Below, one piece after another: positions 23,553 to 52,600 of a stretch of 64,000 nt of DNA. The stretch comes from Schizochytrium sp. TIO01 (lineage: Eukaryota; Protista; Bigyra: Labyrinthulomycetes). Position numbers and translations under genes: made by a program. The notes under the pieces were generated by a model, which did no database searches, was not told the origin of the DNA, and saw nothing but the letters and a program-made list of their open reading frames with translations. Where the stretch lies: assembly GCA_004764695.1 (NCBI GenBank), contig SMSO01000006.1:15859-79858 (forward strand). Reading direction: 5' to 3'. Positions within the stretch are counted from its first letter, which is position 1. The number at the start of each line of letters is the position of its first letter.

Positions 23553-26500
23553 ATGACTACGGCAAGCAAAATTGAGGACATCAGAGAAGATACGACGGAG
23601 ATTCGGTAGGTGCACGATGCAGAAGGGAGGAGACAGAAGAAGGAGGCATCGCGTCGTCGATGTGTTGTAGTAGTCAGCTTTGTAGAAGAAGAATAGTTTT
23701 GTACTAGTAGTGGCACTCATGAAGAAGTTGGAAATGGCATATACTTACTCTCACTTGTTCACAAACAAACAAACAAACACAGTCTTGGTGGGCACGACAT
23801 TGGCTGGGAGGGCGCAAAGGCCGTCGCAAAGGCACTCGAGGGATGCAAGAACCTTCAACAATTGGAGTACGTTTGTGGAATCATCCACGAGGGAAAGCTA
23901 TCGTAATAGTCAGGACCAAGCTTTTTCTTTCTTTCTTTTTAGTGCTTGGTGTTTGTAGACTGCTGGTACACTACCTAAGTAGTTTACGTAGTTGGGTACG
24001 CAAAGAAAGGCAAAGAAGTCTTTTCTATTTTACAAAGAGAAGAAGGAAATCTATATAATTTGATAGGCAGCAGCAGCAGAAGAAGAAGAGATGATTGCTA
24101 TTTCTTGTGAGGAAAAACAAAACAAAACAGGATCAACTGACTGGACCTGTCTTTCCTGACAACGAATGAACAAAACAAACTTATTCATTTATACTCACAG
24201 TCTTGACAACAACAACATTGACGATGAGGGCGCAAAGGCCGTCGCAAAGGCACTCGAGGGATGCAAGAACCTGACTTATCTGAAGTACGTTTGTGGAATC
24301 ATCCACGAGGGAAAGCTATCGTAATAGGCAAGACCAAGCTTTTTCTTTCTTTCTTTTTAGTACTTGGTGTTTGTAGTACTGCTGGTACACTACCTAAGTA
24401 GTTTACGTAGTTGGGTAGGCAAAGAAAGGCAAAAAAGTCTTTTCTTTTTTACAAAGAGAAGAAGGAAATCTATATAATTTGATAGGCAGCAGCAGCAGCA
24501 AAAGAAGAGATGATTGCTTTTTATTGTGAGGAAAAACAAAACAAAACAAAACAGGATCAACTGACTGGACCTGTCTTTCCTGACAACGAATGAACAAAAC
24601 AAACTTATTCATTTATACTCACAGTCTTGACAACAACAACATTGGCTCGGAGGGCGCAAAGGCCGTCGCAAAGGCACTCGAGGGATGCAAGAACCTTCAA
24701 ACTTTAGAGTACGTTTGTGGAATCATCCACGAGGGAAAGCTATCGTAATAGTCAGGACCAAGCTTTTTCTTTCTTTCTTTTCAGTGCTTGGTGTTTGTAG
24801 TACTGCTGGTACACTACCTAAGTAGTTTACGTAGTTGGGTACGCAAAGAAAGGCAATGAAGTCTTTTCTTTTTTACAAAGAGAAGAAGGAAATCTATATA
24901 ATTTGATAGGCAGCAGCAGCAGCAGAAGAAGAAGAGCTGATTGCTTTTTATTGTGAGGTAAAACAAAACAAAACAGGATCAACTGACTGGGACCTGTCTT
25001 TCCTGACAACGAATGAACAAAACAAACTTATTCATTTATACTCACAGTCTTTTTGGGAACAACATTGGCTCGGAGGGCGCAAAGGCCGTCGCAAAGGCAC
25101 TCGAGGGATGCAAGAACCTTCAAACTTTAAAGTACGTTTGTGGAATCATCCACGAGGGAAAGCTATCGTAATAGTCAGGACCAAGCTTTTTCTTTCTTTC
25201 TTTTTAGTGCTTGGTGTTTGTAGTACTGCTGGTACACTACCTAAGTAGTTTACGTAGTTGGGTACGCAAAGAAAGGCAAAGAAGTCTTTTCTTTTTTACA
25301 AAAAGAAGAAGGAAATCTATAGAATTTGATAGGCAGCAGCAGCAGCAGCAGAAGAAGAAGAGCTGATTGCTTTTTATTGTGAGGAAAAACAAAACAAAAC
25401 AAAACAGGATCAACTGACTGGACCTGTCTATCCTGACAACGAATGAACAAAACAAACTTATTCATTTATACTCACAGTCTTCGTAGCAAGAACATTGGCG
25501 ATGAGGGCGCAAAGGCCGTCGCAAAGGCACTCGAGGGATGCAAGAACCTTCAAACTTTAGAGTACGTTTGTGGAATCATCCACGAGGGAAAGCTATCGTA
25601 ATAGTCAGGACCAAGCTTTTTCTTTCTTTCTTTTTAGTGCTTGGTGTTTGTAGTACTGCTGGTACACTACCTAAGTAGTTTACGTAGTTGGGTACGCAAA
25701 GAAAGGCAAAGAAGTCTTTTCTTTTTTACAAAGAGAAGAAGGAAATCTATAGAATTTGATAGGCAGCAGCAGCAGCAGAAGAAGAAGAAGAGCTGATTGC
25801 TTTTTATTGTGAGGAAAAACAAAACAAAACAAAACAGGATCAACTGACTGGACCTGTCTTGCCTGACAACGAATCAACAAAACAAACTTATTCATTTATA
25901 CTCACAGTCTTGACAAGAACAACATTGGCGATGAGGGCGCAAAGGCCGTCGCAAAGGCACTCGAGGGATGCAAGAACCTTCAAACTTTAGAGTACGTTTG
26001 TGGAATCATCCACGAGGGAAAGCTATCGTAATAGTCAGGACCAAGCTTTTTCTTTCTTTCTTTTTAGTGCTTGGTGTTTGTAGTACTGCTGGTACACTAC
26101 CTAAGTAGTTTACGTAGTTGGGTACGCAAAGAAAGGCAAAGAAGTCTTTTCTTTTTTACAAAGAGAAGGAAATCTATATAATTTGATAGGCAGCAGCAGC
26201 AGCAGAAGAAGAAGAGCTGATTGCTTTTTATTGTGAGGAAAAACAAAACAAAACAGGATCAACTGACTGGACCTGTCTTTCCTGACAACGAATGAACAAA
26301 ACAAACTTATTCATTTATACTCACAGTCTTTCTGGGAATAACATTGGCTCGGAGGGCGCAAAGGCCGTCGCAAAGGCACTCGAGGGATGCAAGAACCTTC
26401 AAACTTTAGAGTACGTTTGTGGAATCATCCACGAGGGGAAGCTATCGTAATAGTCAGGACCAAGCTTTTTCTTTCTTTCTTTTGAGTGGTTGGTGTTTGT

Positions 26501-29500
26501 AGTACTGCTGGTACACTACCTAAGTAGTTTACGTAGTTGGGTACGCAAAGAAAGGCAAAGAAGTCTTTTCTTTTTTACAAAGAGAAGAAGGAAATCTATA
26601 GAATTTGATAGGCAGCAGCAGCAGCAGCAGAAGAAGAAGAGCTGATTGCTTTTTATTGTGAGGAAAAACAAAACAAAACAAAACAGGATCAACTGACTGG
26701 ACCTGTCTTTCCTGACAACGAATCAACAAAACAAACTTATTCATTTATACTCACAGTCTTGGTGGGAACAACATTGGCGATGAGGGCGCAAAGGCCGTCG
26801 CAAAGGCACTCGAGGGATGCAAGAACCTTCAAACTTTAGAGTACGTTTGTGGAATCATCCACGAGGGAAAGCTATCGTAATAGTCAGGACCAAGCTTTTT
26901 CTTTCTTTCTTTTTAGTGCTTGGTGTTTGTAGTACTGCTGGTACACTACCTAAGTAGTTTACGTAGTTGGGTACGCAAAGAAAGGCAAAGAAGTCTTTTC
27001 TTTTTTACAAAGAGAAGGAAATCTATATAATTTGATAGGCAGCAGCAGCAGCAGAAGAAGAAGAGGTGATTGCTTTTTATTGTGAGGAAAAACAAAACAA
27101 AACAGGATCAACTGACTGGACCTGTCTTTCCTGACAACGAATGAACAAAACAAACTTATTCATTTATACTCACAGTCTTTCTGGGAATAACATTGGCGAT
27201 GAGGGCGCAAAGGCCGTCGCAAAGGCACTCGAGGGATGCAAGAACCTTCAAACTTTAGAGTACGTTTGTGGAATCATCCACGAGGGAAAGCTATCGTAAT
27301 AGTCAGGACCAAGCTTTTTCTTTCTTTCTTTTTAGTGCTTGGTGTTTGTAGTACTGCTGGTACACTACCTAAGTAGTTTACGTAGTTGGGTACGCAAAGA
27401 AAGGCAAAGAACTCTTTTCTTTTTTACAAAGAGAAGAAGGAAATCTATAGAATTTGATAGGCAGCAGCAGCAGCAGCAGAAGAAGAAGAGCTGATTGCTT
27501 TTTATTGTGAGGAAAAACAAAACAAAACAAAACAGGATCAACTGACTGGACCTGTCTTTCCTGACAACGAATCAACAAAACAAACTTATTCATTTATACT
27601 CACAGTCTTGGTGGGAACAACATTGGCGATGAGGGCGCAAAGGCCGTCGCAAAGGCACTCGAGGGATGCAAGAACCTTCAAACTTTACAGTACGTTTGTG
27701 GAATCATCCACGAGGGAAAGCTATCGTAATAGTCAGGACCAAGCTTTTTCTTTCTTTCTTTTTAGTGCTTGGTGTTTGTAGTACTGCTGGTACACTACCT
27801 AAGTAGTTTACGTAGTTGGGTACGCAAAGAAAGGCAAAGAAGTCTTTTCTTTTTTACAAAGAGAAGGAAATCTATATAATTTGATAGGCAGCAGCAGCAG
27901 CAGAAGAAGAAGAGGTGATTGCTTTTTATTGTGAGGAAAAACAAAACAAAACAAAACAGGATCAACTGACTGGACCTGTCTTTCCTGACAACGAATGAAC
28001 AAAACAAACTTATTCATTTATACTCACAGTCTTTGTAGCAACAACATTGGCGATGAGGGCGCAAAGGCCGTCGCAAAGGCACTGCATAAAGCATGTCCTT
28101 CTGTTAGAATCTAGTAAGTTCCGTCCCCTCTGCTGCTGTTCCCAGCTTGCGCAGAGCATTGCCTTCGCTGGTTATGTCTCCATATGGACTTGTGAGAAGG
28201 CCGTCTTTAGATGCGTTCATCGTTTTTCTAACAAGCGCTCTTATTCTCTTTCATTCGTGTATTCACATTCGTTACAAAACGCAGCTGTGACTTTTTGTCT
28301 GGAACCCCTAAAGAATTGTTCGAAAGGGTGTGTTCTCCTGGAGAGGACATTGCAGATTTCTCGTCAGAGCTCGAATCCTATGCTTCCATAGAGGCTGCAG
28401 AAAGCGAGCCTTCTGCAGAGCCCAAGAACGAGCAAGACGGCATTGATGGCGCCGGGCTTGCTACTTTGGATGGATCTGGGTAAGTTCATGCGGTCAGTCT
28501 TTGTTTGGGATCGTGTAATCATTCATTCCACGAATTGTGTTATTGAGATATAGGGGATCCTAACTTTTGCTTCTGCCTTTATTACTGCTTCAACATCATT
28601 TTGCTCGTTTGCTTACGTCTTCTTGTTCGTCTCAGAGAACGGGCGGATGGAGCGAGCGTGAGTTTCGCTGATGTGGTGCAGCTTGCCAAGAAAGTCTCGG
28701 ACTTGCGCGTTGACCGAGGTGGGGTCAGAGGAAACTCCCTGCAAACTGGGATTGCCTTGCTTGAGGAGTTCGTAGGATCGGCGATCCAGGGCTACTTCGG
28801 CCAAGTGAAGTTGCGACAGGTTTTCGCTGACATCAAGAACTCCAAAGAGAGTCTTGACGTGCTACAAGGCCAGATTCGTGCAAGCTCTGCTGATGGCTTT
28901 GCCAGCCTCATCGAAAAGCGGAACACCGAACGGAGGCACCTGTATTCACTTTTGCAGGTTGTGTACCCATGGGTTCGCGCCAACCTTTGTGAAAGTGATG
29001 AGAGTGCAGTGCGAGAATTCAAAGAGAGAGTTGAAAGTTTGGTAAACGATCTAAAGATCAACCTTGCTCCAGTCGATGAAGAGACCATCACAGATGACTT
29101 CAAACACTGCCAGGAACTCGTAGCTCAGGCTGTCAAATGCGTGGAAGGGTACAAGAGGAGTGGAGAAGGCCAACACAACAAAATTGGTGAACGAAGCCAA
29201 AAAGCTGTAAAGCGCGTCATCTCTCGATTGTCTGAGCTAGAACTTGGTGATGGATTATCGGTTGCCCTGAGGACACCTGAGCAGGCCACGGAGCTAGAAC
29301 CAGAATTATCTGAACTGGAGAGTGCTCTCAAGGAAGAGATCAAAGTTCTACAAGGAGATACACTTCGTGCCCAATTGTCCGAAATACTTTGCGCAATAAG
29401 TGCAACATTTGCTCGATTTGAAGGATACTCTGAAAGTGCTGCGTTGAATGACGCGAGAAAGTGCACACCAACAGAGCTCTCTAATATGTATGACTATGCA

Positions 29501-31324
29501 GTACTGGGTTTGAAACAACCAAATATTATAGATGTCGAGGCATTATACCAGCAACTTGACAACTCGAGGAAAGCGACAGAGAGATTAAAAACTGCCGAAG
29601 CAGAACTCGAAGCTGATGACTTGGATGAGGAAGAACGAGAGCACTATAGAAATCGTATCAAGAAACAAGAGCTCATTCTCTCTCAAGGCAACCCTATCGA
29701 CCTTAGCAAAGCTTTTCGTCATAAGCTTGCTGAGACTCTGCAACATGCGCAGGAACATTATCCAGAGTTGCTGCAAGATAGAGCCTGGCTGGAAAGGCTT
29801 CACGTAAGTGCAGAGGGTGTTTTTGAAGTAGCATGTTCTGACCTTTGGTTGACGAATGTCACAGTCGCGGACTTCAAGCCTGTCGGCGAACCCCTTGCTT
29901 CCAGAGGTGGCAAGAGAGTACAAAAGGTTCTTGACAACGTTGGTAAAACTATGGTTTTGAAACAATTTCAACTCGGCCATTCGAGCCAACACAAAATATT
30001 TTACAGGCAAGCTGCAAATATGGGAAACGTGGCGTCTCAGCACGTGATACGTATCACTGGCGCTTTTGTGGATACCTCTAATGGAGAACCGCGTGGCTGT
30101 ATCGTCATGCCTTTCTACGAGCAAGGTGACCTTGCCAAGTGGATTGAGAGTCATCCTAACGAAGGCAAAGCAGCGCGCGACCGACTTGCTATGGGCCTGC
30201 TTATCGGTGTGGCGGATTTGCATACCTATGGCATTGTGCATTGTGACATCAAACCAGAAAACATTTTCCTCACAAGTAACGGGACACCATTGATCGGCGA
30301 CTTTGACGGCATCAAGGTTGCAGACTACACTGCAACTTACACATCACTTCAGGCAACGCCACGGTATGTTTGCCCCGAGTTGCAGAATGGGCCTGTAGAT
30401 AGGTTTGAAACAGCGATGGACATGTACTCTGTGGGCATAAGCTTAAAGGAGCTGTATCCTACTGAGCGAACCGCTGCAATGCAGACACTTATCGATGCTC
30501 TTACAGCAACAGACCCTGGTCAGCGTCCAACCGCTCGCCAAGCACTCCAACATGAAGCTTTTGGAGCTCCTAAGATCCCTGTCAAGATGTGCCTAGTATG
30601 CATGGAGGAGCATCTGCTTTCCGAGGGCACGAGCTGCGAGGAGGGAGACTTTCTTTGCAGAGACTGTATCGAATCTTCTGTAGAAGCGGCGGCACGGCCA
30701 CTTGCTAACGTAAGAGTGGATGCTGATGGAACAATGGCATGCATGAAACCTGAATGTAGTGGAAGGATATCAGGTCAAGAAATCACCCGTCTTGCACCAA
30801 CTGCTTTGAATCACCTATTGTTGATTGCGAAGATGAAGGCAGAAAATGAAGCAGCAGTTTGGGCGGAGAAGGAGATCCAAAGGCGTATAGCACAAGTTTT
30901 ACGTGCTGATGAACAGAATCGCGACGCACGGATTCATTTACTTCATATTCAAGAGAAGATCTTGAGCACATGTTGTCCGAACTGTAAGGCATATGTACAC
31001 GATTTTGACGGTTGCTGTGCTGTAGAGTGTGGTAATGAGACTTGTGGTCATCACTTCTGCGCTTGGTGTCTTGAGTATAGTTCTCAGGATGCAGATGTTT
31101 GCCATGGTCATGTGAGAACCTGCTTGAAAAAGCTTGGACAAGATCCATTTTTTGCTGATTCATTTGAGCAGGTTCGTGAGGCGTGGCAGTTGCTCCGCGC
31201 AGCACGTCTGCGTGAGTACTGGGATGCAAAAATTCAGGATAGAAATCTTCGACTCGTTCTGAAAGAGTTATTGTCACCTTTGCTAACACCAGATATTGTT
31301 GGCGCAAACTTTAGATTGGAATAA
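23553..31324 (+). CDS. LRR(11)-helical-non-RD Ser/Thr kinase-RING1/RING2(Rcat) protein, 14 exons, predicted 1286 aa (paralog 2, intact)
   Basis: Exons 23553-23605; 84-nt LRR exons starting at 23783, 24201, 24625, 25048, 25478, 25908, 26327, 26757, 27176, 27606, 28030; then 28285-28479 and 28636-31324. All introns are GT..AG and phase 2, and the total is 3861 nt with no internal stop. Kinase motifs VLKQF, HCDIKPEN, GDFDG, YVCPE. Zn fingers CLVC-x11-CEEGDFLCRDC-x24-CMKPEC and CPNC-x9-GCCAVEC-x4-CGHHFCAWC-x11-CHGHVRTC. Confidence 0.9.
23783..28113 (+). repeat. Tandem exon+intron array, 10 periods of 418-430 bp (11 exons)
   Basis: Exon-start spacings 418, 424, 423, 430, 430, 419, 430, 419, 430, 424. 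Introns are near-identical apart from (cag)n/(aag)n/(aaaac)n copy number and a few SNPs. Confidence 0.97.
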
Positions 31325-35116: not shown

Positions 35117-35234
35117 ACATTCGATCATACCACGCGGGTAACACCTCAACTCATTCTCACTGAGAGGTAAACTCGCGTAGGGTCAGGTCAGTAGTATTAT
35201 AGGGGACTGCATACAAAGCCCCGGTGTTGAATAT
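35117..35234 (+). rRNA. 5S rRNA copy 3, diverged (probable pseudogene)
   Basis: About 10 substitutions versus copies 1 and 2, several in helices; TATA and T-run retained. Confidence 0.85.
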
Positions 35235-38060
35235 TTTTTGTCATTTCTATTTAAACTTAGCATGAATAGAAAGCAACTCTAAAGTGTTACAATATTTCTT
35301 TTGCAGAGGTGAGTATTATAATCGCCTTAGCGCATAATGTCAGCAAGACATCTAGTACTCATGGAAGGCGCTACCCTTCAATTCATCGACTATATCGTTT
35401 GTATGCAGGACAATGGTTAGATTCCAACCTTCATTCGTATGAGTCTAGAAAGCAGAATCGACAAGAGTGATAGCATTTTGAAAGAGGTTGTCACCATAGG
35501 ATCAGCATCCTTCGAAGGTTTTACACTCCAGGCGAACAACTCGTGCTGTACACATCTTCCATCCAATATTCAATTCACATTTATCTCCTTCTACAAGTTG
35601 TTTGCCTCTTCAGCAGTGTAAATAGAGAATTAAAAAAAGGATTGGCTTGGCTATAAAAGAATAGTCTTCCGAATAGGTGAGGTGGCCTTCTAGATGCAAA
35701 AACTATAATTGAATTCTGAATGTTTCAATGCAACGGAGCACTCGCATTGCTGCTTCTGAAACCTTCGAAAATTGGCAACTCATTCAACTTTCACTAAGCA
35801 CACATGTATTTCTGCTCTGTTCCTATCGTACTTCGCCTGGCTCAGGCTGACGTGGGCGAGAGTGAAGAGAATTTCGATGTGAATAGCTGGGCGTACGTGT
35901 TCACCTTACCACGTTTGTTTCCAGAAATGTCTAGTCTGCCTGGATCCAATATCGTATTCCTCAGAAATGACGACATTGGTCTTATGAAAGTGTTGATGTA
36001 AGTATGAATATTCATTTATTATTAGGAGTCCAGGTATCATAAAGTCTTGGCATGTTTGAAAGTATTTGGTACTGGTATCTAACCCCGTAGCCTAGCATGT
36101 TCTGGGTGAAGATACCAAGGTGCTTCCACAGCCACAAGCTGATGCATTCTTCCTGTAGCTAGAGGCAGGTTCAAGAAAAGTTTATCGAGTTGAAAGAGAA
36201 CTTGCAAGTAACGAATTGTCTGCACTCAAGAATGTATCACAGAACCGTAATGTACAAATGTTTTATAAGCCAGATAACCCAAGGGATGAAGTATCTGAAG
36301 TACGTGGAATACCATACGCTGCTGCTAATTCAAAGAGTTTCGTACACAGCATGCCGTGAAACAGCTTTATATGTCACATTTAACACGGAGTGAACTAGTT
36401 ACGCTGGGATTTAATTTACAAGTACTCTCAGGGAGAAGAATGTCGACGCAAAGAACACATTGAACCTTTTTTTCGAACGATACTCCAGCCTGATGATTAT
36501 TTTGTATTGACATTATTAAATCACAACCAGCTATAAATCGGACGACTAAGGCTGTTGTCGAAGATTCTTTTGAACAGAATACAATTTGAAATCTATGACC
36601 CAGAGAAATGTTTGGTACATTGGATCAGCGCTTTATACACGTCAAGAGAATTCCTCGCAGAAGCTTTCACGATCAGCTGATGCAAGTCTTGTGCATACAC
36701 TTAGAAGCAACTAAAAGGAGTTTAGCGTCAAAGAACTAAGGGAGATGTTTCAAAGGGCTACGATAGGTATCTTTGAATTGCTGAGGACTCCAAAGGTTCT
36801 TGAGGCCCCTAATGAGGCAGTACCTTCTTTCGAATGAAGGCTTAAAGTGAACATGGACGCCAAGCCGTACAAAGCATCAAAACTCTGAGGCACAAACTCG
36901 ACGTGGTCGGATCGCATTCCGTACCTCTGACGGAGAGGTTTACATTTCTGATCTGGTACTTGAGAGTATGGAAGGAGATTATCTCTCATCTCTACGTGCT
37001 TGAAGAGGTCTTCATTCCTTTTGCTGACATTCTCTGAGTACGGAAGGACGGGTGGGCTGGGGGACCAGATCCAATTGTTTGCACAGTGCACGTTATTTAA
37101 TGTGTTAAAGCAGAATTGTACAGGTAAAGTCGAACCTCGGGTTTGTCATTTCGCGAGAATCTTCGACCTACTGCACATCATCATGAGGTTATATACTATG
37201 CTACGTTAGCTTGAAATGTATTGGATAATATCGAAGGACAGACATTGAGATTTAAAGGGGGGAGGAGGGGGGCACTCCAGACGCCCATCCTCTCCCTGTA
37301 ATCATTGTTTTGACCCCTGGGTCCAAGCTCGAACATAAGACTCTGGATCTCTGATATAGGTATTAAAATGTAATTTCTGACAGACTGAATGAACCTTGAC
37401 AGTGTTGTAGCAGGTCGTTCCCTCGTTGACTATACACTTATTGTTCATTTGTGTGCAAAAAATTGGACCAAGCTGTAAACACTAATGTGATAGCAATCAA
37501 AAACGACTTCAAGTTGTTGTCCCTTTTTGGAAACAGTTTTTTGTTTTTAATTTTTTTTTAAAATATTAAATTTTATTACAATTATTTTTATTAATTAATA
37601 TCATTAATTAAAAAGATACTGGAAACTAATGAAAGCACCTTAAGCGGAAAGGGGCGAAGCACCTTAAAACAAGAAAGGAATGAAAGGTAATACGTAGTAG
37701 TAGTAGGCCCTAACCACTACTCAATCTAAAATAAAATAGGCAATCCTTCTCAAACTCGAAACACGAGGCAGCGTGAGCTCACAGTTTTTTCGCCCCCGCA
37801 ACCTCCCACACCCCTCCACGGGTTGGTTGCTCGTGGGCGTGGCTTGCTCTGCTGACGCAGTCACGAGGCGTCGCGCCGGGTCCGCTTCTCCTTCCTTACT
37901 GCTCAGAAGAAGAAGTCTTCGTTCCTGATCAGTAGTGCAATAAACAAGCTACTCTCTCCTTTGAGTGTCAAAACAAAGCAAAGACAAAGCAAAAAAGACA
38001 ATCAACGTGGTTGATCAATTCGTTTGCTCCATCCATCAAAGGTGACACTGCTCAAAGACG

Positions 38061-41000
38061 ATGACTGGCGCACGCAGAATTGAGGACATTAGAGAAGATA
38101 CGACGGAAATATAGTAAGTGCAGGAGGAGACAGAAGAAGAATGTACCGCGTGATCGGTGTAAAGAGCAAGTTAGTTCTGTAGAAGAATAGTTTTGTTTTG
38201 TAGTTGCACTATTGAAGTTGGAGATCGCACATACTAACTCTACCTTGCTCACCAACAAACACAGTATAAGTTGGAAAAGCATTGGCGATGAGGGCGCAAA
38301 AACCGTCGCAGTAAAAGCAAAGGGATGCAACAACCTTGAAGACTTGTAGTACGTTCATGGAATACAGAGAAAAGTGGAGAAACGAGCAGAACGGAAGAAG
38401 ACTTCTCCTGTGATTATCCTTTTTCAAAATGAAAAAGAGGAGGATCAATCGAACCACTGACTGTGCTGGGTGGTGCTGTTCCGAATGAACTTGTTCATAT
38501 GTAATTACAGTCTTAGAGATAACAACATCGGCGATGAGGGCGCAAAAGCCGTCGCACAGGCACTGGAGGGATGCAAGAACCTTCAACGGCTGGGGTACGT
38601 TTGTGTAATCTACGAAAGGCTAGGCTCGTACCCCATACGATTGCTCTCTTTCTTCTTTGGGGGGGTGTTTTGAAAAAGATAATCCAAACGAAACCACCTT
38701 ATGTAATCGAGTTGTATAAAAAGAAGGGAACGCTTTTATAAGAGAGAGAGGGGAAAAGTAAACCTACGTTTTCTTTAATTAAATGCGATAGAGAGAGCAG
38801 TTAAATTAGCAGAAGAGAGCAAAGGAAGAACAATGATTTTGTGATGATTTCATCAAACTTGAAAAGAAGAGGATCCATCGAATCACTGACTGTCTTAAAC
38901 TGTTTCCTCCCTGCCAACGAATGAACTTATTCACATACACTCACAGTCTTAACGGAAACAACATTGGGGATGAGGGTGCAAAGGTTGTTGCAAAGGCGCT
39001 GAAGGGATGCAAGAACCTCAAAGACCTGTAGTACGTTTGTGGAATCCTCGGAAAGCTAAGGCGTAGTTAGGCCTCATTTTTTTTTCCGTGGTGTTCTGAG
39101 AAAAGGGACCAAAACGAAATTCTTCTAGTAGTCCCAGTAGTTGAGTATTGTAGAAAGGAAAGAACTTGTTTTTAATTTAAGAGAAGAAAGGAAGAAAGAA
39201 AGGAAAAAGGAAAAAGGAATGTTAGTGTTCTATTCACGAAATTGTGATGGAGAGACGTGCACAACGGAAGAAGACTTCTCCTGTGATTTTTAAAATTGTG
39301 AAAATTAAGAGGATCAATCTAATCACTGACTGTCTTGAAATTTGCCTTTGCTGACAACGAATGAACTTATTAATATATACTCACAGCCTTTCTGACAACA
39401 ACATTAGCGATGAGGGCGCAAAAGCCGTCGCAAAGTCTCTGCACAAATCGTGTCCTTCTGTTCAAATTTTGTAAGTTCAATCTCCTCCGCTGTTGTTCCC
39501 AGCTTGCACAATGCCTTGCGCAGAACCTTGCCTTAGTTGGTTCTCTCACTCTCCGCGAACTTTCGAGGCCCTCTTTGAATGCTGCGTTCACCGTATTCTA
39601 ACAAGCGTTTTTATTCTTTCATTCTTTCACAACGCAGTTTCTACAATCATTATTCGCCTTTAACCCCAAAAGAATTGTTCGTGGATGTGTGTTCTCCTGG
39701 AGAGGACATTAATTCCTCTTCAGACACCGATTCCTGTGCCCCCACAGAGGCGGCAGAACGTGAGCCTTCTGTAGGGTCCAAGGTCAAGAAAGATGGCGCA
39801 GGGCTTGCTACGGAACCTTGTGGTCCAGATAGATGTGGGTAAGTTCATGCGGTTTCTGTGTTTGGAATTGTGATCATTCATTCTACGAATTGTGTTGTTG
39901 AGATATAGGGGATCCTAACTTTTGCCTCTGCCTCTCTTATTGCTTCTGCTATCTTCTCTTTGCTTGTTGTTTTACATCTTCTTGCTCGGCTCAGAGAACG
40001 GCTGGATGGCACGAGCGTGAGTTTCGCTGATGTTGTAAACCTTGCCAAGAAAGTCTCGGACTTGCGCGCCGGCCGAGGCGGGGTCAGAGGAAACTCTTTG
40101 CAGACTGGGATTGCCTTGCTTGAGGAATTCGTAGGACCAGCGATACAGGGCTACTTTGGCCAAGTGAAGTTGCGACAGGTTTCCGCTGAGATCAAGAACT
40201 CCAAAGAGAGTCTTGACGCACTACAAGGCCATATTCGCGCATGCTCTGCTGATGGCTTGCCCAATCTCACCGAAAAGCGGAATGCTGAGCGAGATCGCCT
40301 TCATTCGCTTTTGGAGGTTGTATACCCATGGGTTCGCGCAAAGCTTTGCAAAAGTGATGAGGATGCAGTGCGTGAATTCAAAGTGAGGACCGAAAGTTTG
40401 GTACAGGATCTAAATATCAACATTGCACCAGTCACTGAAGAGACATGTACAGCTGACTTTAAATACTGCCAAGAGCTCGTGGGCCAGGCCACCAAGTGCA
40501 TCGAAGAGTACAAAAAATATGGAGAAGGTCGACCAAGAAACATTGGCGATCGAAGCCAACAAGCTGTAAAAAGCGTCATCTCTCGACTGACTGAGCTAGA
40601 ACTTGGTGATGGATTATGGGTTGCTCTGAGCACACCTGAGCGGGCCATAGAGCTCGAGACCGAATTAAGTGAACTTGAGTATGCTCTACAGGAAGAGCTC
40701 GAAGTTTTACGAAGCGACACACTTAGTGCCCACTTGTCCGAAATACTTTGCGCAATAAGTTCAACATTTGCTCGTTTTGAAGTATACTCAGAAAGCACTG
40801 TGCTGAATGAAGCGAGCAAGTACTCCACAGAGGAGGTCTCTGAACTATATGACTATGTAGTGCTGGGTTTGAAAGAACCAAATGCCTTAGACGTTGAGGC
40901 ATTATACCAGAAACTTGACAAATCGAGGAAAGCGACGGAAAGTTTGAAGAGAGTTAAAGAAGAACTCAAAGCAGAAGACCTGAATGAGGAAGAACTAGAG

Positions 41001-41969
41001 CACCATAGGAGTCATATCAAGAAATATGAGCTCATGCTCTCTCAAGGAAATCCTATCATGCTTAGCAAACGTTTTCGCCATAAGCTTGCTGAAACCCTAA
41101 AACACGCACAGGAACATTATCCTGAGCTATTGCAGGACAGAGCATGGCTAGAAAGGTTTCATGTAAGTGCAGAGGGTGTTTTGGAAGTAGCTTGTTCTGA
41201 TCTTTGGTTGACGAATGTAACAGTTTCGGACTTCCAGCCTGTTGGCGACCCCTTTGCTTCCAAAGGTAACAAGAGAGTTCAGAAAGTACTTGATGGAGAT
41301 GGTGAAGTTCTAGTCCTCAAACAGTTTCAACTTGGAGATCCAGGTCAATCCAAAACCTTCTACAAACAAGCTGCAAATATGAGGAAAGTGATGTCTCAGC
41401 ATTTGGTACATATTACTGGCGTTTTTATGGATTCTTCTAATGGAGAGGAATGTGGCTGTATCATTATGCCTTACTACGAGCAAGGTGACCTTGCCAAGTG
41501 GATTGAGAGTCATCCTAACGAAGGTAAAGCAGCACGCGACCGACTTGCTGTAGGCCTGCTTATCGGTGTGGCAGATTTACATACCCACGGCATTGTGCAT
41601 TGTGACATCAAACCAGAAAACATTTTCCTCACAAGCAACGGGACGCCATTGATCGGCGACTTTGACGGAATCAAGATCGCAGATTACACTGCAACTTACG
41701 TATCACTCCAAGCACCGTCACGGTACAGTGCCCCTGAGTTGCTGAATGAGCCCGTAGATAAGTTTGAAACAGCGATGGACATGTACTCTGTGGGCATATG
41801 CTTAAAGGATCTGTATCCTACTGAGCGGACCGCTGAAATGCAGACACTTATCGATGCTCTTACAGCAACAGACCCTTGTCAGCGTCCAAGTGCTCTTGAA
41901 GCACTCCAACATGAAGCTTTTGGAGCTCCCAAGATCCCTGGCAAGATATGTCTTGATTTTACGAAGTAA
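38061..41969 (+). CDS. LRR(4)-helical-non-RD kinase paralog 3, predicted 854 aa, stops at the start of the RING
   Basis: Phase-2 exons 38061-38113 (MTGARRIEDIREDTTEI), 38265-38348, 38511-38594, 38947-39030, 39387-39470, 39638-39838, 39995-41969. HCDIKPEN/GDFDG/YSAPE intact; ends KICLDFTK*; decayed RING-homologous DNA continues to ~42310. Confidence 0.85.
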
Positions 41970-43438
41970 GGTCTGCTTTCTGAGAGCATGAGCTGCGAGG
42001 AGGGAGGGAGACTTTGCAAAAACTGTATCGAAACTGCAGTAAAAGCGGCGGCATAGCCACCAGCTACTGCTAGGGTGGGCATCGATGGAAGGACAGCACG
42101 CATAAAACCTAAACCTAGTCGAAGGATGTTATGTTAAAAAACTACCTGTCTTGTACCAACCGCTTTGAATCATTTTTTGTTTATTGCGATGATGTAGGCA
42201 ACAACCCAAGCAGCAGCCTGGGCTTGGAAAGAAATCCAAAGGCGCACAGAAGTTCTACGTGCAGGTGAACAAAACAATGAGCATTTACTGGATTTTCAAG
42301 AGAAGGTCTTCAGAGCTGTCGGCCTGCGTAGTGCTTAGCACAAGCCGCAGAATTGTAAATATCTATTTGGTTTCGCGTAATGCTAATAAAGAAATAGCAT
42401 TTCTAAGCAAGCCAATAATTGATAACGTCAACTATGCATGCTTATTAAATAGTAGCAATTTTCTAAGGCTCTTTGCTGCTGTTTCTGGTGTTGAATCATA
42501 TCTATCAGTGCAAGTTTCTCACCAAGCTACGGCCGTTCTCTGCAATGGACGTTGTGTGCATCTGTCATAACGAAATGCAGCTCCACTGTAGGGTTGCGCT
42601 TTCTTCATCATTGAGGATGTTCAGCGCTTTCAAGCAACATAGATCACCTATCCGCTCTATAATTACGATAACCCTTCATTCTTTGGTACAATCTTCTAAA
42701 ATTCGAAAAACGCATCTTAACCTTACACTTTGGGTACTGGGAACAAATGAAAGAGAATTCTTGAAGTCACTTTGATTCAAACATGAAAGGACAACGTATT
42801 CTTTAGAATGGTTTAATTAAATCAACGTTTACAGCTTCCAGTTTATCAAAATTTTAATTCTGCTCATCAAGCTCTTACTGCTCATACCTGTTGCTAGCTT
42901 TACTCAAAAATTTCTTCTGGCCTTGTCAAAGCCGATGCGAACAAAGACGTAATTGATCTAGTACGTGGAAACTTATTCCAGATGAGACCCGTTACGTACT
43001 CACCAGCCTCAGCTCCCTCGGATAACTTATTCTTGCTTTTACCCACAGTCTCTTCTTCGTTAGCTAAGAAACGGCATCTAAGTTGCCTACGCATGTTCTA
43101 GGTCAAAACCAAGATTAAAATATTGTTGTGTTACCGAGGGGAAACACCACGAACAAGATCAAGTGCAACTTTTATAAATATAGCAATGCTGGGTCATAAT
43201 AAATAATGTATTCCTTTATACGGTAATAAAGAATTGAATGCCTTACTAAAAAGAAAACTAGTCGATCAACAGTCAATTTCGCTTATTTGGTATCGACACA
43301 CTTGAAGCAACGCACAACCCATCCTGTTACTGGAGTATAGGGTTCTCTTTAGCTTTTAAGTCCCGTTTCCATCTGACTGGTTAGTATGGAAAGAATGGTC
43401 ATGCTACATAACAAGAAAAGACCACAAAATTTAATATA

Positions 43439-46629: not shown

Positions 46630-49600
46630 CTATGGATGAATGATGCCGAGGTAGTCGCGGAGCCTGCTAGCTTCGTTGCGGGAGTGGTGTCGGGCGACAC
46701 GCTCTATGTAGCGGCGGACGATTTTCGGAGCACTGCGGTGTAGGTGCTTGAGGTCGATTGCTTCGTTGGAATAATCGGTTGGGTCGATGCCTTTGTACTG
46801 GATGCGGACGAAGATGGAGTTGTCAGGCTTGCTGAAGTGATTGAGCAGTTTGCCTTGGAAAGCGGACAGACTGTTGTGCTTGATGAAGTCTTTGAGCTTC
46901 GGAGTGATGCTCAGGGTGCTGTCGCAGTAGTAGCGAAGTCTGCTAATGTGTGCGAGACGTGTTTCGCCGGAGACAATATCTTCAATGGTGTAAAGATGGT
47001 TGCCTGGACCAATTGCTGTGACTCGGGCTGGGCCTAGCCATACTGGGGACAATTTTGATGGTCTGGGGCGGGAGACGATCACGTAGGTGACTGCGTCGCC
47101 GATTTGCAGATGTAAGGCGCCTGCGCGATGGCGCTGGTCCCATCTGGTGCGTGCAGCGGCACGACTATCTTCAAGTACCTGGCGTGCTTTCATGCGGTCG
47201 GTCGTGAGCGCGGCATGAAGTTCGGAGCAGAGGCGCGTTAGTACTTCTGGAGTGGGTCGTGCGTGTGCTTGGTCTTCGAAGACTTTGGTTGGATGTACTA
47301 GGTCTTCAAGAGGTTTCTTGGGGGTGATTGCGGTCATTAGTTCTAGGGGACTTTTTCCGTTGAGAGATGGAATTTGCCGTGAGTTCATGGCAATGTTCGC
47401 AAGTGGGAGAATTTCTTCGTATTGGTCAAAGGTTAGACCGAACTCGTTGGTGAGTGTGGAGAGATTCTTGATTGCAATGCCGTTGGCGCGTTCAACACTT
47501 CCGTTTGTGTAACTTTCGTGTGGAACACTGTAGATGTGATCAATGCCAAGTTGATGTTCGAGACTTTGCATTAATTTGGCGGTAAAGTGGGAACCCATGT
47601 CTGAATAAATGATGCGTGGTGCTCCAAATATTTTGATCCACTCTACGATGCCTCGAACTGCTTCTTTTGCAGTTGGGCCGGTGCATGGTATGAGGAGAAC
47701 ATATTGAGAGAGCAGGCATTTGCAGAGAAGTAAGTAGCCCTTGGCTTGAACGCCAGTAGTTCTGTTGTTAAACAGCTGTAAGAAGTCAATGCCAATTGCT
47801 TCGTTTACATGTTGCGGAACAAAGGTTGGTCCTAGAGGTCTAGCCATTTTATTGCCACTTTTGGTTGTCACGCAATGTAAGCATTGTTGGACAAAGCGTG
47901 TAACCTGCTGCTTGAGGTTATGGAGATAGAACACTTCCTGTGTGGTGCGTTTTGTAGCGTGGATTCCTTGATGTCCGTGAATACCTGCGTGTGCTACTAG
48001 GAGGACGCGTGCAATGAGGCTTTCATTATTTCTGGGAAGCCAGATGCGTTTACGTTCTGAGTCTGCTTGCGTTACGTAGATGAGGGAATCTTGAGTAGTT
48101 GTAGGAAGGCCGTTAATTAAGGTAACTCCATTTTTGCTGGTGATTTTATCTTCATTCGAGTTGTTAGAAGATTGCTGTAGAGCTGTTTGTTGTGCAGCTC
48201 TGATTGTTTCGGTGTTGGGAAACAGGAAATCACCATGTGCAAGGGATGCTGTACGAGCATCATCGAAGGTGAAGGGTTCGATTGCACAAGTGTCTTCTGC
48301 GGCTTGGTCGCCGAGAAGAGCAGGGATGTCCTCAGATTGGTGTTCTGTGGAATCTTCAAATTCGGCTTCATCTTCAACAGTTTCTTCAAAGTGCGGTATC
48401 GAGGTGGTTGATGCCGAAGAGCTAGTGTGCTCTGGTAGGGGGGGGGGTGGAGAAGGAACGTTTGGGGAGGAAGACGGATTGGGGAGGCCCGGTGTGAAAA
48501 AATTTCGAGTGCGCCGGGTGCGCGTGGAAGTACGAATATTGGCAGAAGAAACGTCGGCAGGGCCAAATCCACGGCCGTATGCGTAGGTTTTATTGCCTAT
48601 CGTGTAGTCGATGCGATCGCTGTCGTCATCGTTGTCCATGCTGAAACCGAGATTGTCGCCAGCGTCGAGGCCTGCGAGAGCGGAGCGAGCGACGCGAGCG
48701 AAGGCGTCAGGTTGGTGCACGTGGGTGGCGTGACGGCTGAGGAAGTCAGCTGCGATGTTGTCTTCGCCAGCGATGTGACATATGTGGATCGGGAGGGAGG
48801 CTAGAAGGATACTGGCTCGGGTCATGATTGAGACGGAGAGGTCTTTGGCGTTGGGATCGGTGATCCTCGCCGCGACTTTGCTGATGTTGAGATGGTCAGA
48901 GTATGCAATGAGGGAGCGTGCGGGTCTGAGGAATTCGGGGTGAGCACGGATGGAACGAATTAAAGCGATAAGTTCTTGTCTTGCGGTTGCCCATCGAGAT
49001 TCGGTGGAAGTCCAGCGGGAGCCAAAGAAGGCGAGAGGTTTTAAGCTACGCTCTCGAGGAGGTTTGAGCATTTCTTCGGGGGCGACGGCTGCGAAGACGG
49101 CGCCGAAGCCTTTGTCAGAAGCGTCAACGAAGAGATTGATTTCATCTTCTGGTTGGGGCCAGTGTAGTGGGACAGAGTCCAGGAGGGCCTGTTTGGCTTG
49201 AGTATAGGCCTGTGTGTGTTCGTCGGTCCATCGGGTTTGAAGCTGTATTTTCTGGCCGGCACGTTTGGTCTTCTTTTTGGATGAAGCGAGTGCCGTGGTA
49301 CACAGGGTGCGTAGAGGGTCGATAATTCGGGGGAGGTTAGGGACATGGTCAGCGAGGAAGCTGCATGTGCCGAGGAAACTAGATAGGTCACCTGCTGTTT
49401 TGGGTGTGTCTAGAGTCCGAATGAAATCGAGCCTGGAGGGGTCGGGAATGACGGAACCATCGGAAGTGAGAATACGACCAAGGAATTTGATCGATTGTGC
49501 GTAGAGGCATACTTTGCTGGCGTTGAGATAGAAGTGTCTGTCGGCGCAGCGCTGGAATATGCGTTCTAATTTGTCGAGGAGGGCTTCATCATCTTGGGCA

Positions 49601-52600
49601 GCGCAGAGCATGTCATCAATGTAGTTGAACAAGTCGTGGCTGTTGATGAGGTCGCCGAAACATTCTTTCATTTTGAGGCTGAAACTCTGGGAAGAGTTGA
49701 CTGTGCCCATGGGTTGGTGGAGACATTCGTAAATGGCGTTGGGAGTGACGAGGAGGAAAAGTTGGATACTTTCCGGTGCGAGAGATAATTGGTAAAATGC
49801 TGAGACTGCGTCCAGGCTAGCATATACTGATGGTCTGTCGTTCATGATGTTGTGGATAACGTCCATGGGGCGGAGTGGAGCCAGTTGAATGGTTTGGAGA
49901 AAGCGGTTGGTTTGTCGAAAATCCCATACTACTCGGAAGGAGCCATTTGGTTTTGGGACGAGCATAGCCGGTGCGAAGCCGATGAGTTTGTCGGGATGCC
50001 GGATCTTGTTGTCCCAAAGTCTGTCAAGAGATAATCTATATATGGGACCGGGGTATACTAGGTATTGACGAGTGGTCATTAGTCACGCCTTTTTATAGCC
50101 CCTAACAGATTAAGAGTCAAATTGCTGAAACTCTAGGAGATAGAGTTGCCGTATGTTGGTCCCGGGTTCGATCCCCCCATGATGTAAGTGCCTGAAAAAG
50201 AAGGACTTACTGGGGGGTAGGGGTGTCCTATTCCTGCTGGGATGTCGAATCAGTCTCTAACCGAAATATGAACCTTTCGCCCAGAGAATGGGGGGGTGTC
50301 AAGAGATAATCTATATATGGGACCGGGGTATACTAGGTATTGACGAGTGGTCATTAGTCACGCCTTTTTATAGCCCCTAACAAAGTCGAACACGGTTTGC
50401 AGCTACAAGTTGAGCCATGTGTTCTTCGAGGAATTCTAGCTGGGCCGGAGTGTATCTACGGCTAGCAGGTTTTGAGATAGTCGGTACTGTTTCGAGGGGA
50501 TAAGTAGGTTCAGTCCAGGGTGTGACGTCCCAAGGTTTCATGTCGGGGCGGTAACTGGTGGCAAAAATTGAGAAGTATTTGTCCTGAACCATGGTGTGAA
50601 GTCGATTGCGGAGCGCTGGATCTAGGCCGTTGGCAATGGCCTCTTGAATGCGCTGGTCGAGTTCGGCGTGACAATCAGCGGTGTGTTTGTCATGGTTGGT
50701 TTCGATGTCTTCAAAGAAAGTGTCAGGGAGAATTTCTGAGTCACCTTGGTTGAAGTCGAGATTCCTGAGTCCTTGGAGGGCTTGGGCAGGAGTGGGAGTG
50801 TAGTCATCAATAGGATTTTTGGGTGATGATTTTGCTACGGTGGGAGCTGGATCGTCTGATGGTAGATCGCTGGTGGACAGTACAGCTTTTGCGAGATGTC
50901 GGCGAGCTTGTGCTGTCGGGAGTACCTTCATGCTGCTGGTGAGCGTGGCGGTGGAGGTATCATAGTCGGTTCTGTTGTGGAATGACTGGGTGTCTTGGTC
51001 AAAGACGGTGCCGGCAAGCGTTTTTCGGAGTATCGTTGCAGCAGGAGGAATTCCTAATTGAGTAAGGAGGGTTTCACCTAGTAGTAGTTCGTTTCCAATA
51101 TAGGAGTTATCTGGAACGTAGAAGGTAACGTGGAGGAGTGTACCATACTGAGTGAGGTGGAGAAGAAGGTCAATGTGAAGCTTGACTTTCTTGACGATCT
51201 GGCTGGATCCTTGGCCGGTGTGTACCGTGGATGGATCGCTGGGGCAGAGTGGTGTTGTTTCAATAGGACCGATTGATTTCTCAATTTGTGCGAGTAGGCG
51301 CGGTGGTAGAAACGAGTGGGTGGCACCGGAGTCGAAGATGCATGTGTCAATGATGCAGGATTTCTTCTGGGATAGGGGTACCGTGGGCTGCGCGTTGCTG
51401 TAAACGCGTGCTGGTGGGGTTTTGAGTAGCTGTTCTGAGTCCTTCGGTGGAGTGAGGATTTGTGGTGAACGGGCCGAGGTGGCGGTGTGTCGCCTAGCTG
51501 AGGAGCTGGGTTTGGCGCTTGTGGCCTTGGCTTTGGCCAGTCGATTTTTATGTTGTTCGACGGCGGCCTTGTGCAATTTTGCGGTGCCGGGATTGGCTGC
51601 TAAAAATGCTTGCTTGTAGGTTTGGAAGTCTGTGTTTGAGAGTTTCTGACTGCAGTTCCGGTTGAGTCGTTTTGTGCGACTGTTCCAAGTGAGGAAATCG
51701 TGATTGTCGTGACAGGCAGGGCAGGTGTTGCCACTTTGGGGTCCTGTGAGTGTCGGCGATTTCTTTGGAGGTTTGGGGGTTGTGACGGCGTGTTGCGATG
51801 AGGTGTGCCGCATTGTTGAGGGAATGCCAAACGGGTAACGGTATTCTTTGCGCATGAAGTGGCGGAGGATGACTATAATGTCATATGTGGTGAGATAGTG
51901 AGGAGCTGATTCCAGACGGTCATGGTGCCAAGGATGAGTTTCATCGTTGAAGACGTTGTTGATTGTCTTTTGGATTTCGGAGTGTAATTGGCTGAGACAC
52001 TTCTGGGCGAGGGACTTGCTGGTCGTTGGGTTGGATTGGATTGTGTTGAGGATTTCAAGGTAGTGACGGAAGCCGTAATGGATTGCGGTTTTGGTGAGTG
52101 TGGCTTGGAGCTGGAGGAGGGGCTGAGAGACATTCATTGGAATGATGCCGAAGTGTTGGCGGAAGGCGGTGGTGATTTGTTGTTGGACATCAACAAAGTT
52201 ATTGCGTAGTGCATTTCGTTGCCAGTAGGTCTGGAATGCGTGGCAATGTTCTTCGGTAATCTTGATGGGTGCATTTGCCCATGCTTGTTTGCCCATTTGT
52301 GCTGCGTGGGCTTCTAGGAGTCCTTGAAATGCGACTTGCCCTTCGCTTCCCATGGCGTGGTGGGGAGGAAGGATGGGATGTCCCATTGCTTTACAGCTTT
52401 CTTTGTACCGATCGTAAGCGTGCATCCAGCGGTTGAAAGTACCCGGATCACAGGGATTGGGAAGTGGTGTGTGATTTTGGTTGTAGTATGTGAAGGCGGT
52501 GGACTTCGATATGGGGTGCAACTGGTCATGCTCATCTGTTGAGCGAGTGTGCTTTTCCATGAGCATGGAGCTGGAGTCTGAGGGTGCGCGGTCTTGTCCC

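Follow-up and report, generated by a model that had tools for sequence, protein, structure and literature searches.

How can the coding sequence of a gene be more variable than the introns that separate its exons? This question is raised by a tandem array of leucine-rich repeat (LRR) exons at positions 23783-28113 of a 64,000-nucleotide stretch of the Schizochytrium sp. TIO01 genome (GenBank assembly GCA_004764695.1, contig SMSO01000006.1, positions 15,859 to 79,858 of the forward strand), which is referred to as the window throughout. The original prediction for this array had held that nearly identical introns flank exons with hypervariable contact residues, and had ascribed the pattern to diversifying selection or to targeted cassette conversion on a homogenised scaffold. 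In our analysis, the array forms the N-terminal, sensor-like portion of an intact and transcribed gene of ~1,290 codons, composed of a short first exon, eleven LRR exons, a linker exon, a non-RD protein kinase and a tail resembling RING-between-RING (RBR) ubiquitin ligases. We propose that concerted evolution of its 422-bp unit, combined with selection that preserves ligand-face diversity in a germline repertoire, accounts for the pattern, and we assign a probability of roughly 0.7 to this explanation as a whole.

Tandem Repeats Finder reports one array at 23778-28083 with a period of 430, 10.1 copies and 94% matches. It resolves into eleven LRR exons of 84 nt, which are separated by ten introns of 334-346 nt and follow each other with a unit period of 418-430 (Table 1). 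CACAG stands directly 5' of each LRR exon and GTACGT directly 3', replaced by GTAAGT after exon 11. Each exon opens on the third base of a split codon, and all array introns are phase 2. One 28-residue repeat is encoded per exon, with the consensus L-x-x-N-N-I-G-x-E-G-A-K-A-V-A-K-A-L-E-G-C-K-N-L-x-x-L-x, and the variable residues that had been listed around the LxLxxN motif, together with the IGW, IDD, IGS or IGD that comes next, match our translations and split codons exactly. Alignment of ten exon-plus-intron units of the window array gave a mean pairwise diversity of 0.106 for the exon versus 0.016 for the intron, that is a 6.5-fold difference. All variable exon columns fall within columns 5-25 and 73-84 (23 of the 33 columns of this zone, none of the 51 elsewhere in the exon), and 22 of the 338 intron columns vary (zone versus intron, Fisher p = 8e-17). 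Columns 26-72 show no nucleotide variation at all across the ten full exons, as had been claimed for the exon core. The array intron contains microsatellites of varying length.

At its 3' end, the array seems to run into a stop codon, TAG at 28112-28114. However, this is not the end of the gene: exon 11 stops at 28113 in phase 2, and the GTAAGT donor, whose first base is 28114, cuts through the TAG, so that the frame runs on past the apparent stop. A homologous junction between cap and linker is present in P0129, a transcript-derived sister protein described below. The kinase domain of the large last exon is matched by Pfam Pkinase (1e-27) as well as by kinases in the PDB; its catalytic loop reads HCDIKPEN, with C for R, which makes the kinase non-RD, and its activation loop begins with DFD. 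It is the only domain recognized by Pfam, which returned nothing significant for either the tail or the N-terminal half of that exon and found no Roc-COR GTPase output domain in the downstream exon. The tail nevertheless resembles RBR ligases in its sequence, its cysteine pattern being like that of RING plus Rcat, a likeness that Pfam did not confirm. By eye, no stretch resembling a signal peptide was seen in the first exon and no hydrophobic segment between LRR region and kinase, and the protein is therefore probably cytosolic. The germline gene is complete and open, with canonical splice sites throughout. In these searches, the exons were submitted singly, and the fold described below is that of a sister protein.

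Table 1. Coordinates of the LRR-kinase gene and of associated features in the window. The split codon given is the one ahead of the exon.
Feature	Position	Strand	Split codon	Description
5S rRNA gene	22177..22295	+		Rfam RF00001, 96.5 bits; ~1.26 kb upstream of the ATG
First coding exon	23553..23605	+		ATG, 17 codons plus 2 nt, hydrophilic, donor GTAGGT; homologous to the N-terminus of sister P0129
LRR exon 1	23783..23866	+	R	LGGHDIGW...LQQL; read from the sequence
LRR exon 2	24201..24284	+	D	LDNNNIDD...LTYL; T-type 3' block; RNA-like joint to 24625
LRR exon 3	24625..24708	+	N	LDNNNIGS...LQTL
LRR exon 4	25048..25131	+	D	LFGNNIGS...LQTL
LRR exon 5	25478..25561	+	N	LRSKNIGD...LQTL
LRR exon 6	25908..25991	+	D	LDKNNIGD...LQTL
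LRR exon 7	26327..26410	+	D	LSGNNIGS...LQTL; together with exon 8 an 849-bp dimer, of which exons 9 and 10 are a duplicate
LRR exon 8	26757..26840	+	D	LGGNNIGD...LQTL
LRR exon 9	27176..27259	+	D	LSGNNIGD...LQTL; sole difference from exon 7 is the block swap TCG to GAT
LRR exon 10	27606..27689	+	D	LGGNNIGD...LQTL
LRR exon 11 (capping)	28030..28113	+	H	LCSNNIGD...ALHKACPSVRI, then TA; donor GTAAGT at 28114
Ten array introns	within 23867..28029	+		GTACGT...CACAG, phase 2; the span also holds LRR exons 2-10
Linker exon	28285..28479	+		195 nt, acidic, translated without stops
Large last exon	28636..31324	+		895 codons: helical region, protein kinase domain, Cys-rich RING/Rcat-like tail
Second 5S rRNA gene	35117-35235			Downstream of the array, upstream of gene 2; lower-scoring
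rDNA unit	10813-16329			Rfam scan

The LRR exon aligns to repeats of NOD2, ribonuclease inhibitor (RI), RanGAP and designed RI-like proteins, and its sequence places it in the RI/NLR type, with a 28-residue period and the consensus LxxLxLxxNxIGxxGaxxLaxaL. Against Pfam LRR_6, a single exon of 27 residues scores 20.9 bits (E 3.4e-4); this lies below the whole-protein cut-off of 23.4 bits, as expected because the query is one repeat only. A library-wide phmmer search with the read-through open reading frame (ORF) of one exon returned mostly generic RI-like LRR proteins of other eukaryotes. One match, P0129, is a protein of 399 residues from a public transcriptome. Its organism string reads "Auranti...", and we base its origin on this string and on its match to the genome of the window rather than on the taxid 87120 of the record, which resolves to a fungus. 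P0129 is a spliced sister of the window gene with a homologous first exon, four LRRs, the same junction of cap and linker and the same Cys-rich tail; it carries PF13516 in precomputed annotation, and its gene lies on contig C31 of the same genome, where the match coordinates indicate one LRR of ~28 residues per exon piece. A search with the kinase exon yielded just three close relatives in the database, all ORF-sized and without a joined LRR model.

In the AlphaFold model of P0129, the LRR part has pLDDT values of 91-98, strands and helices alternate with a period of 28, and the top Foldseek matches are NOD2, NLRP3, NLRP1 and RI. Transferred to the numbering of the unit, codons 26-28 (x-L-x) form the strand, codon 25 lies just before it, codons 2-3 occupy the loop after the strand and codon 8 lies in the first helix turn (N-cap), while the invariant core corresponds to helix and convex loop. 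The strand and the strand-to-helix loops make up the ligand face in RI and NLR repeats. The model of the sister protein thus agrees with the earlier assignment of the variable sites to the exposed LRR face: they represent the x residues of LxxLxLxxN and the x of IGxEG, in predicted strand, loop and helix N-cap. The variable face may bind a ligand, and the protein may act as a sensor of pathogens or danger that signals via its kinase and ligase-like tail.

Contigs assembled by Logan from public sequencing runs provided read evidence for the locus; it has to be kept in mind that such contigs cross-map between paralogs, and deviating letters in them mainly reflect this cross-mapping. All 30 bins are covered by two independent DNA runs, which stem from different studies, mostly at ≥99%. 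In the two RNA-like runs, bins with exons are covered and intron-only bins are empty, and an RNA-like contig matches 23530-23604, at the first exon, without mismatch. Both RNA-like runs, X16 and X18, contain a GT..AG joint across 28480-28635 that is absent from the two DNA runs. One contig with this joint deviates from the linker exon at 1 of 173 nt, whereas the nearest paralog is 4% away, showing that the window gene itself is transcribed and spliced at the linker. P0129, as the product of a public Aurantiochytrium transcript, documents the same splicing with one LRR per exon in the sister gene. The concern attached to the original prediction, namely that the variants could be consensus errors, is eased in part: the two DNA runs contain the sequence, albeit as partial evidence from cross-mapping contigs. 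In X16, region 23400-28300 also shows many joints between non-adjacent LRR exons with skips of 760-2740 nt. Most of them carry foreign letters and thus originate from paralogs, although in-frame exon skipping may account for some.

The gene is one of a family with at least 50 paralogs. Matches to its kinase exon number 51, of which most keep an open frame of ~925 codons, and the array intron has at least 330 matches of 93-100% identity on many contigs of the 64-Mb assembly. Twenty paralog loci and the window together yielded 189 full-length introns, 155 of which follow an 84-nt exon preceded by AG. As 152 of these 155 exons are stop-free in one frame, the analysis set comprised 152 units from 21 arrays, to which the following values refer. 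Diversity is 0.028 in the intron and 0.021 in the exon core, on a scale on which random sequence would score ~0.75, and it reaches 0.56-0.71 at exon columns 5-10, 0.53-0.57 at columns 23-25, 0.33-0.59 at columns 73-80 and 0.41-0.69 at columns 82-84. The claim that the exon is more variable than its intron thus holds beyond the window array, with 0.53-0.71 at x codons versus 0.028 in the intron genome-wide.

Does the low intron divergence reflect homogenisation or merely youth of the units? For the same genes, the unique linker introns have diverged between paralogs by 0.148 and 0.086 on average, the kinase exon has a synonymous divergence (dS) of 0.22 at a ratio of nonsynonymous to synonymous divergence (dN/dS) of 0.30, and the first intron and 5' region of the paralogs are 77-95% identical to those of the window. 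Neutral sites that lie a few hundred nucleotides off have diverged 3-8 times as much as the array introns. With 2.8% in the array introns versus 9-15% in the unique introns and a kinase dS of 0.22, the arrays have been homogenised and are not merely young, which bears out the homogenised scaffold of the original prediction. The traces of exchange are likewise visible. Array introns differ by 0.026 within and by 0.028 between arrays, and all four gametes occur at 34 of 91 pairs of intermediate-frequency intron sites. Moreover, positions 21487-24079 of the window (2,593 nt) are 100% identical, without gaps, to paralog locus L041 (G000:C33, ~2.0 Mb). The shared tract comprises the 5S gene, the spacer, the first exon and the first LRR exon; identity then decays inside the array, and the kinase exons of the two loci differ by 8% (dS 0.175). 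This tract is a recent inter-chromosomal exchange with its endpoint in the array.

One alternative is a recent burst, in which the units are young and very strong positive selection on new point mutations has driven the x codons apart without any homogenisation. The equal divergence of introns within and between arrays as well as the many rare intron variants (54 singletons among 191 segregating sites) would fit such a scenario. However, it is at odds with the higher divergence of unique introns and synonymous sites in the same genes, with the frequent four-gamete pairs and with a tract of full identity that stops inside an array although the gene tails differ at dS 0.175. In addition, synonymous sites within the variable zone have diverged too, and the variable blocks are 2-6 nt apart without single-step intermediates in units whose flanking introns are <1% apart. 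We therefore regard a burst as very unlikely; our data show that the arrays are under concerted evolution by ectopic exchange.

If the scaffold is homogenised, the behaviour of the variable codons requires explanation. Using the Nei-Gojobori method, we obtained proportions of synonymous (pS) and nonsynonymous (pN) differences of 0.41 and 0.54 for the x codons (2, 3, 8, 25, 26, 28), of 0.26 and 0.09 for scaffold codons within the variable zone and of 0.016 and 0.023 for core codons 9-23. Synonymous divergence inside the zone is also evident at Leu24 (pS 0.31) and Leu27 (pS 0.97). Hence, the excess diversity is regional and includes synonymous sites, and a dN/dS above 1 cannot be claimed. A comparison of first LRR exons as positional orthologs, whose orthology is uncertain, gave a pN of 0.50 versus a kinase-exon pS of 0.19, which is suggestive of positive selection. 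The composition of the hypervariable codons is far from neutral: they contain 2 stops among 465 codons versus ~34 expected, V and M are absent, L, I, A and P reach at most one fifth and K one third of the neutral expectation, and W, G, N, Y, Q, T and H are enriched. Within a unit subject to conversion, a neutral site would undergo the same homogenisation as the intron, and sites that remain saturated must be either protected or regenerated. As the x codons escape homogenisation, with residues that fit a constrained, polar-aromatic surface, we infer that selection maintains their diversity; the argument is indirect but strong. The diversifying selection of the original prediction is thus retained in this form, on the grounds of escape from homogenisation, residue bias and avoidance of stops, but not in its classical form. 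As a further possibility, selection could have enforced diversity within each array; this idea was not supported, as x-site divergence is 0.50 within arrays and thus slightly below the 0.54 between arrays.

The variable positions fall into three blocks per exon that behave as units of exchange. Codons 2-5 (12 nt, holding the hypervariable codons 2-3) occur as 88 distinct motifs among the 152 units. For codon 8 there are essentially two alternatives, S (TCG or TCA) and D (GAT), separated by three changes. The 3' block comes in two old types, CTT-CAA...TTR and CTG-ACT...CTK, that differ at synonymous leucine positions and have subtypes each. Linkage is strong within blocks, and there is essentially none between the blocks of one exon or across the intron. 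x-site divergence is uncoupled from the divergence of the flanking introns (Spearman rho 0.03). The 63 unit pairs with both flanking introns <1% apart include 56 in which codons 2-3 are not the same, the difference amounting to 2-6 of 6 nt. Seven true recent duplicates of whole units, including window exons 7-8 versus 9-10, carry three changes in the variable zone versus 0.71 expected at the intron rate (P = 0.035); in two of these changes, several nucleotides at once have been swapped for an allele that also occurs elsewhere.

Such swaps in recent duplicates raise the possibility that the x codons are actively rewritten, perhaps somatically or clonally, through copy-choice as in variable lymphocyte receptors (VLRs), through hypermutation by a deaminase or in the manner of diversity-generating retroelements (DGRs), or through frequent mitotic subtelomeric conversion. 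The restriction of diversity to few codons with borders sharp to one nucleotide, the variation of synonymous sites in the zone and the vicinity of recombination-prone 5S and ribosomal DNA (rDNA) repeats would all be in line with a targeted process. However, the germline gene is complete and spliceable, the high number of motifs at codons 2-5 leaves no room for a small donor pool, and codon 8 and the 3' block represent discrete old haplotypes with strong internal linkage. Adenine mutagenesis of the DGR type in particular was discarded: all bases vary, at all three codon positions, and there is no template copy. The only reverse transcriptase in the window belongs to a Ty3-like retrotransposon with RNase H and integrase. 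We consider active targeting slightly less probable even than the recent burst. Of the cassette conversion claimed originally, the swapping of blocks between units is upheld, and nothing points to a targeted or somatic step.

A third view holds that intron and scaffold are conserved because they function as nucleotide sequence, be it in splicing control, as a recombination substrate or at chromosome ends, and that the x codons are merely old and unconstrained. Uniform constraint would yield equal divergence within and between arrays, and a structural role at chromosome ends has been proposed in a preprint (10.1101/2023.06.15.545109). Purifying selection on the sequence itself is, however, difficult to reconcile with length-variable microsatellites in the intron, with the direct evidence for recent exchange and recombination and with the constraint on x codons, that is their biased residues and avoided stops. 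Moreover, the introns of a second family member in the window, gene 2, have decayed except at their ends once outside the exchanging pool. This view is about as improbable as targeted rewriting. Finally, although the array lies between two 5S genes and shares the ~421-bp period of published Group 5 elements reported without database similarity, a non-coding satellite or spacer with chance frames, or else an assembly or consensus artefact, has next to no probability, considering that one and the same frame is open in 152 of the 155 units whose splice signals are intact, that stops are depleted in the hypervariable codons, that the exon matches the LRR_6/NOD2/RI repeat and leads in frame into a kinase exon under purifying selection, that the RNA-like runs lack the introns and a public transcript represents the spliced sister protein, that errors would ignore codons and frame, and that two independent DNA runs contain the sequence.

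Several observations weigh against concerted evolution combined with selection for ligand-face diversity, or limit how far it can be taken. With a pN/pS ratio of only 1.3 at the x codons and both values close to saturation, the data do not demonstrate classical positive selection. Synonymous divergence at Leu24 and Leu27 is on a par with that of the x codons, which fits old haplotypes protected from conversion or a regional mutational process. Codon 8 and the 3' block are dimorphic or oligomorphic and not freely hypervariable. Furthermore, near-zero and near-saturated diversity meet at borders that are one nucleotide sharp, which implies that conversion must far outpace mutation. The window array itself is less diverse than the family average, with LQTL-D as 3' block in most units, and includes the recent two-unit duplication. 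The structure map derives from the sister protein and not from the joined product of the window gene. Last, the GT..AG joints that connect LRR exons (24284 to 24625 and 27259 to 27606) were seen in X16 only and have short flanks of 22-31 nt, so that they may come from paralogs.

Taken together, we favour the following scenario for concerted evolution under selection. The 422-bp unit of exon plus intron would be exchanged between arrays on many chromosomes, by ectopic gene conversion as well as by unequal crossing-over, and this exchange would hold the introns and the helix and convex scaffold at ~97-98% identity. Selection would discard exchanges that make the solvent-exposed codons alike on the beta-strand face and in the following loop, and these codons would thus stay diverged nearly to saturation. 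Breakpoints in the invariant parts may shuffle three mini-blocks per exon, namely codons 2-3, codon 8 and codons 24-28. Duplication or loss of a unit stays in frame, because all introns are phase 2. The outcome would be a repertoire, encoded in the germline, in which one scaffold presents many different concave surfaces.

A bolder version, which we think unlikely although less so than any of the alternatives above, would regard the arrays linked to 5S genes and rDNA as a recombination-driven diversification system, with frequent ectopic and possibly mitotic exchange among at least 50 LRR-kinase-RBR genes. In such a system, the common scaffold would guarantee homology while three mini-cassettes per repeat keep reshuffling. 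If so, strains and even clonal lineages would differ in their receptor repertoire, in-frame exon skipping between near-identical phase-2 introns could add variety at the transcript level, and a unicellular organism that is host to mirusviruses would apply the logic of var, VSG and VLR genes to its receptors.

Linkage to 5S genes is a feature of the family at large. In blastn searches, 16 of 20 paralog loci (L031-L050) proved to have an identical 119-nt 5S gene, equally oriented, ~1.26 kb upstream of the start codon, and most members of the family thus have a 5S rRNA gene ahead. The repeated module therefore consists of 5S gene, spacer and LRR-kinase gene, and many 5S genes of this genome may be tied to the family. 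For the array introns themselves, Rfam returned no RNA family. Farther upstream in the window, two tRNA genes at 8751-8824 (+) and 9603-9673 (-) lie between a 5S gene at 3313-3431 and the rDNA unit.

Other copies in the window and elsewhere are in various states of decay. Gene 2 (38062-42317, +) has just four LRR exons, and its tail carries two TAG and two TAA stops; its introns resemble family introns only at the intron ends. It looks like a decaying copy and provides a natural control for introns outside the exchanging pool. At the edge of the window, positions 1-1859 (+) hold the 3' part of the large exon of another family member with 93.6% nucleotide identity, which is probably frameshifted as its tblastn matches fall in pieces in different frames. 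At loci L032 (G000:C7) and L036 (G000:C23), alternate or most units lack an intact 84-nt exon owing to wrong length, frameshift or stop. Their introns are still 94-96% identical to the family, and these broken arrays apparently stay in the exchanging pool. The Ty3-like long terminal repeat (LTR) retrotransposon mentioned above is represented by two long ORFs at 46633-53145 (-) with reverse transcriptase, RNase H, integrase zinc finger and integrase core domains, in a GC-rich region with strong GC skew. Two other eukaryotic library proteins, P0032 and P0045, one of which has two kinase domains, contain long runs of near-identical RI-like repeats (…IGSDGAKAVASEIAKCTNLSTL… and …IGDEGAKALAKALENNQVLTEL…) that vary mainly at the same x positions as the window array. 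Many protists may share this combination of homogenised scaffold and variable face.

These findings bear on a published class of repeats. LORE-TEARS Group 5 of Aurantiochytrium limacinum consists of ~421-bp units between consecutive 5S rRNA genes near subtelomeric rDNA, and was described as spacer repeats without database similarity that possibly serve chromosome-end maintenance (bioRxiv 10.1101/2023.06.15.545109). With its flanking 5S genes and nearby rDNA unit (Table 1), the window array is the same object; in contrast to that description, its units read as spliced exon-intron parts of protein-coding genes. Within the library that was searched, no paper revisits the spacer reading of Group 5 or describes such a family in thraustochytrids. 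Part of a "non-coding" subtelomeric spacer class is hence re-read as protein-coding. Candidate immune receptors of heterotrophic protists are almost unknown, and Aurantiochytrium is a laboratory-tractable host of mirusviruses; the family would couple an NLR-like repeat surface to a kinase and a tail resembling ubiquitin ligases. The unusually clean contrast between identical introns and saturated contact codons marks specificity residues without experiment, and provides a natural system in which the interplay of gene conversion and selection can be followed at single-codon resolution.

How does the family compare with known recognition systems? With TALE proteins, to which the array had been likened, it shares near-identical tandem coding repeats that differ at few specificity codons; TALE repeats, however, are intronless, helical and bind DNA. 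The parallel to lamprey VLRs, drawn at the same time, extends to LRR surfaces built from interchangeable pieces, but not to the incomplete germline gene that is assembled somatically from flanking cassettes, as the germline gene of the window is complete. Animal NLR and RI proteins (NOD2, NLRP3, NLRP1, RI) provide the nearest matches in sequence and fold, with the same 28-residue strand-helix unit, and mammalian RI and several NLRs have one or two repeats per exon. Unlike animal NLRs, the window gene lacks NACHT and NB-ARC, and the repeats of NLRs and RI are individually diverged rather than homogenised.

LRR resistance genes and receptor kinases of plants are known for hypervariable solvent-exposed residues at xx of LxxLxLxx and for exchange between paralogs. 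XA21 and FLS2 are examples of non-RD kinases, and many pattern-recognition receptor kinases are of the non-RD type. The window family resembles them in the placement of its diversity at the x residues of the beta-strand motif and in its non-RD kinase (HCD). It differs from plant LRR receptor kinases in that neither signal peptide nor transmembrane segment was seen by eye, in its RI/NLR-like class of LRR, in having one repeat per exon and in a far higher identity of scaffold and introns.

The nearest described system is the exon-per-repeat, exon-shuffled LRR of the ROCO (LRR-Roc-COR) proteins of Ectocarpus, which were presented along with NB-ARC-TPR proteins as candidate receptors (Zambounis et al. 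2012, PMC3341825; see also PMC11378527). The Ectocarpus repeat is of 24 residues (72 nt) and that of the window is of the 28-residue RI/NLR type (84 nt, phase 2); the output is Roc-COR in the former and a non-RD kinase with an RBR-like tail in the latter, and only the window family is linked to 5S rRNA genes and subtelomeric rDNA. Introns and scaffold of the window family are homogenised to ~97% genome-wide, whereas the sections of the 2012 paper considered here describe exon shuffling followed by divergence and contain no such report. Both are large stramenopile families that are clustered with pseudogenes, in both a repeat equals a single exon that does not vary in length and has introns of symmetric phase, exons have undergone duplication and shuffling, and the sites that vary or are selected sit on the LRR domain's concave side.

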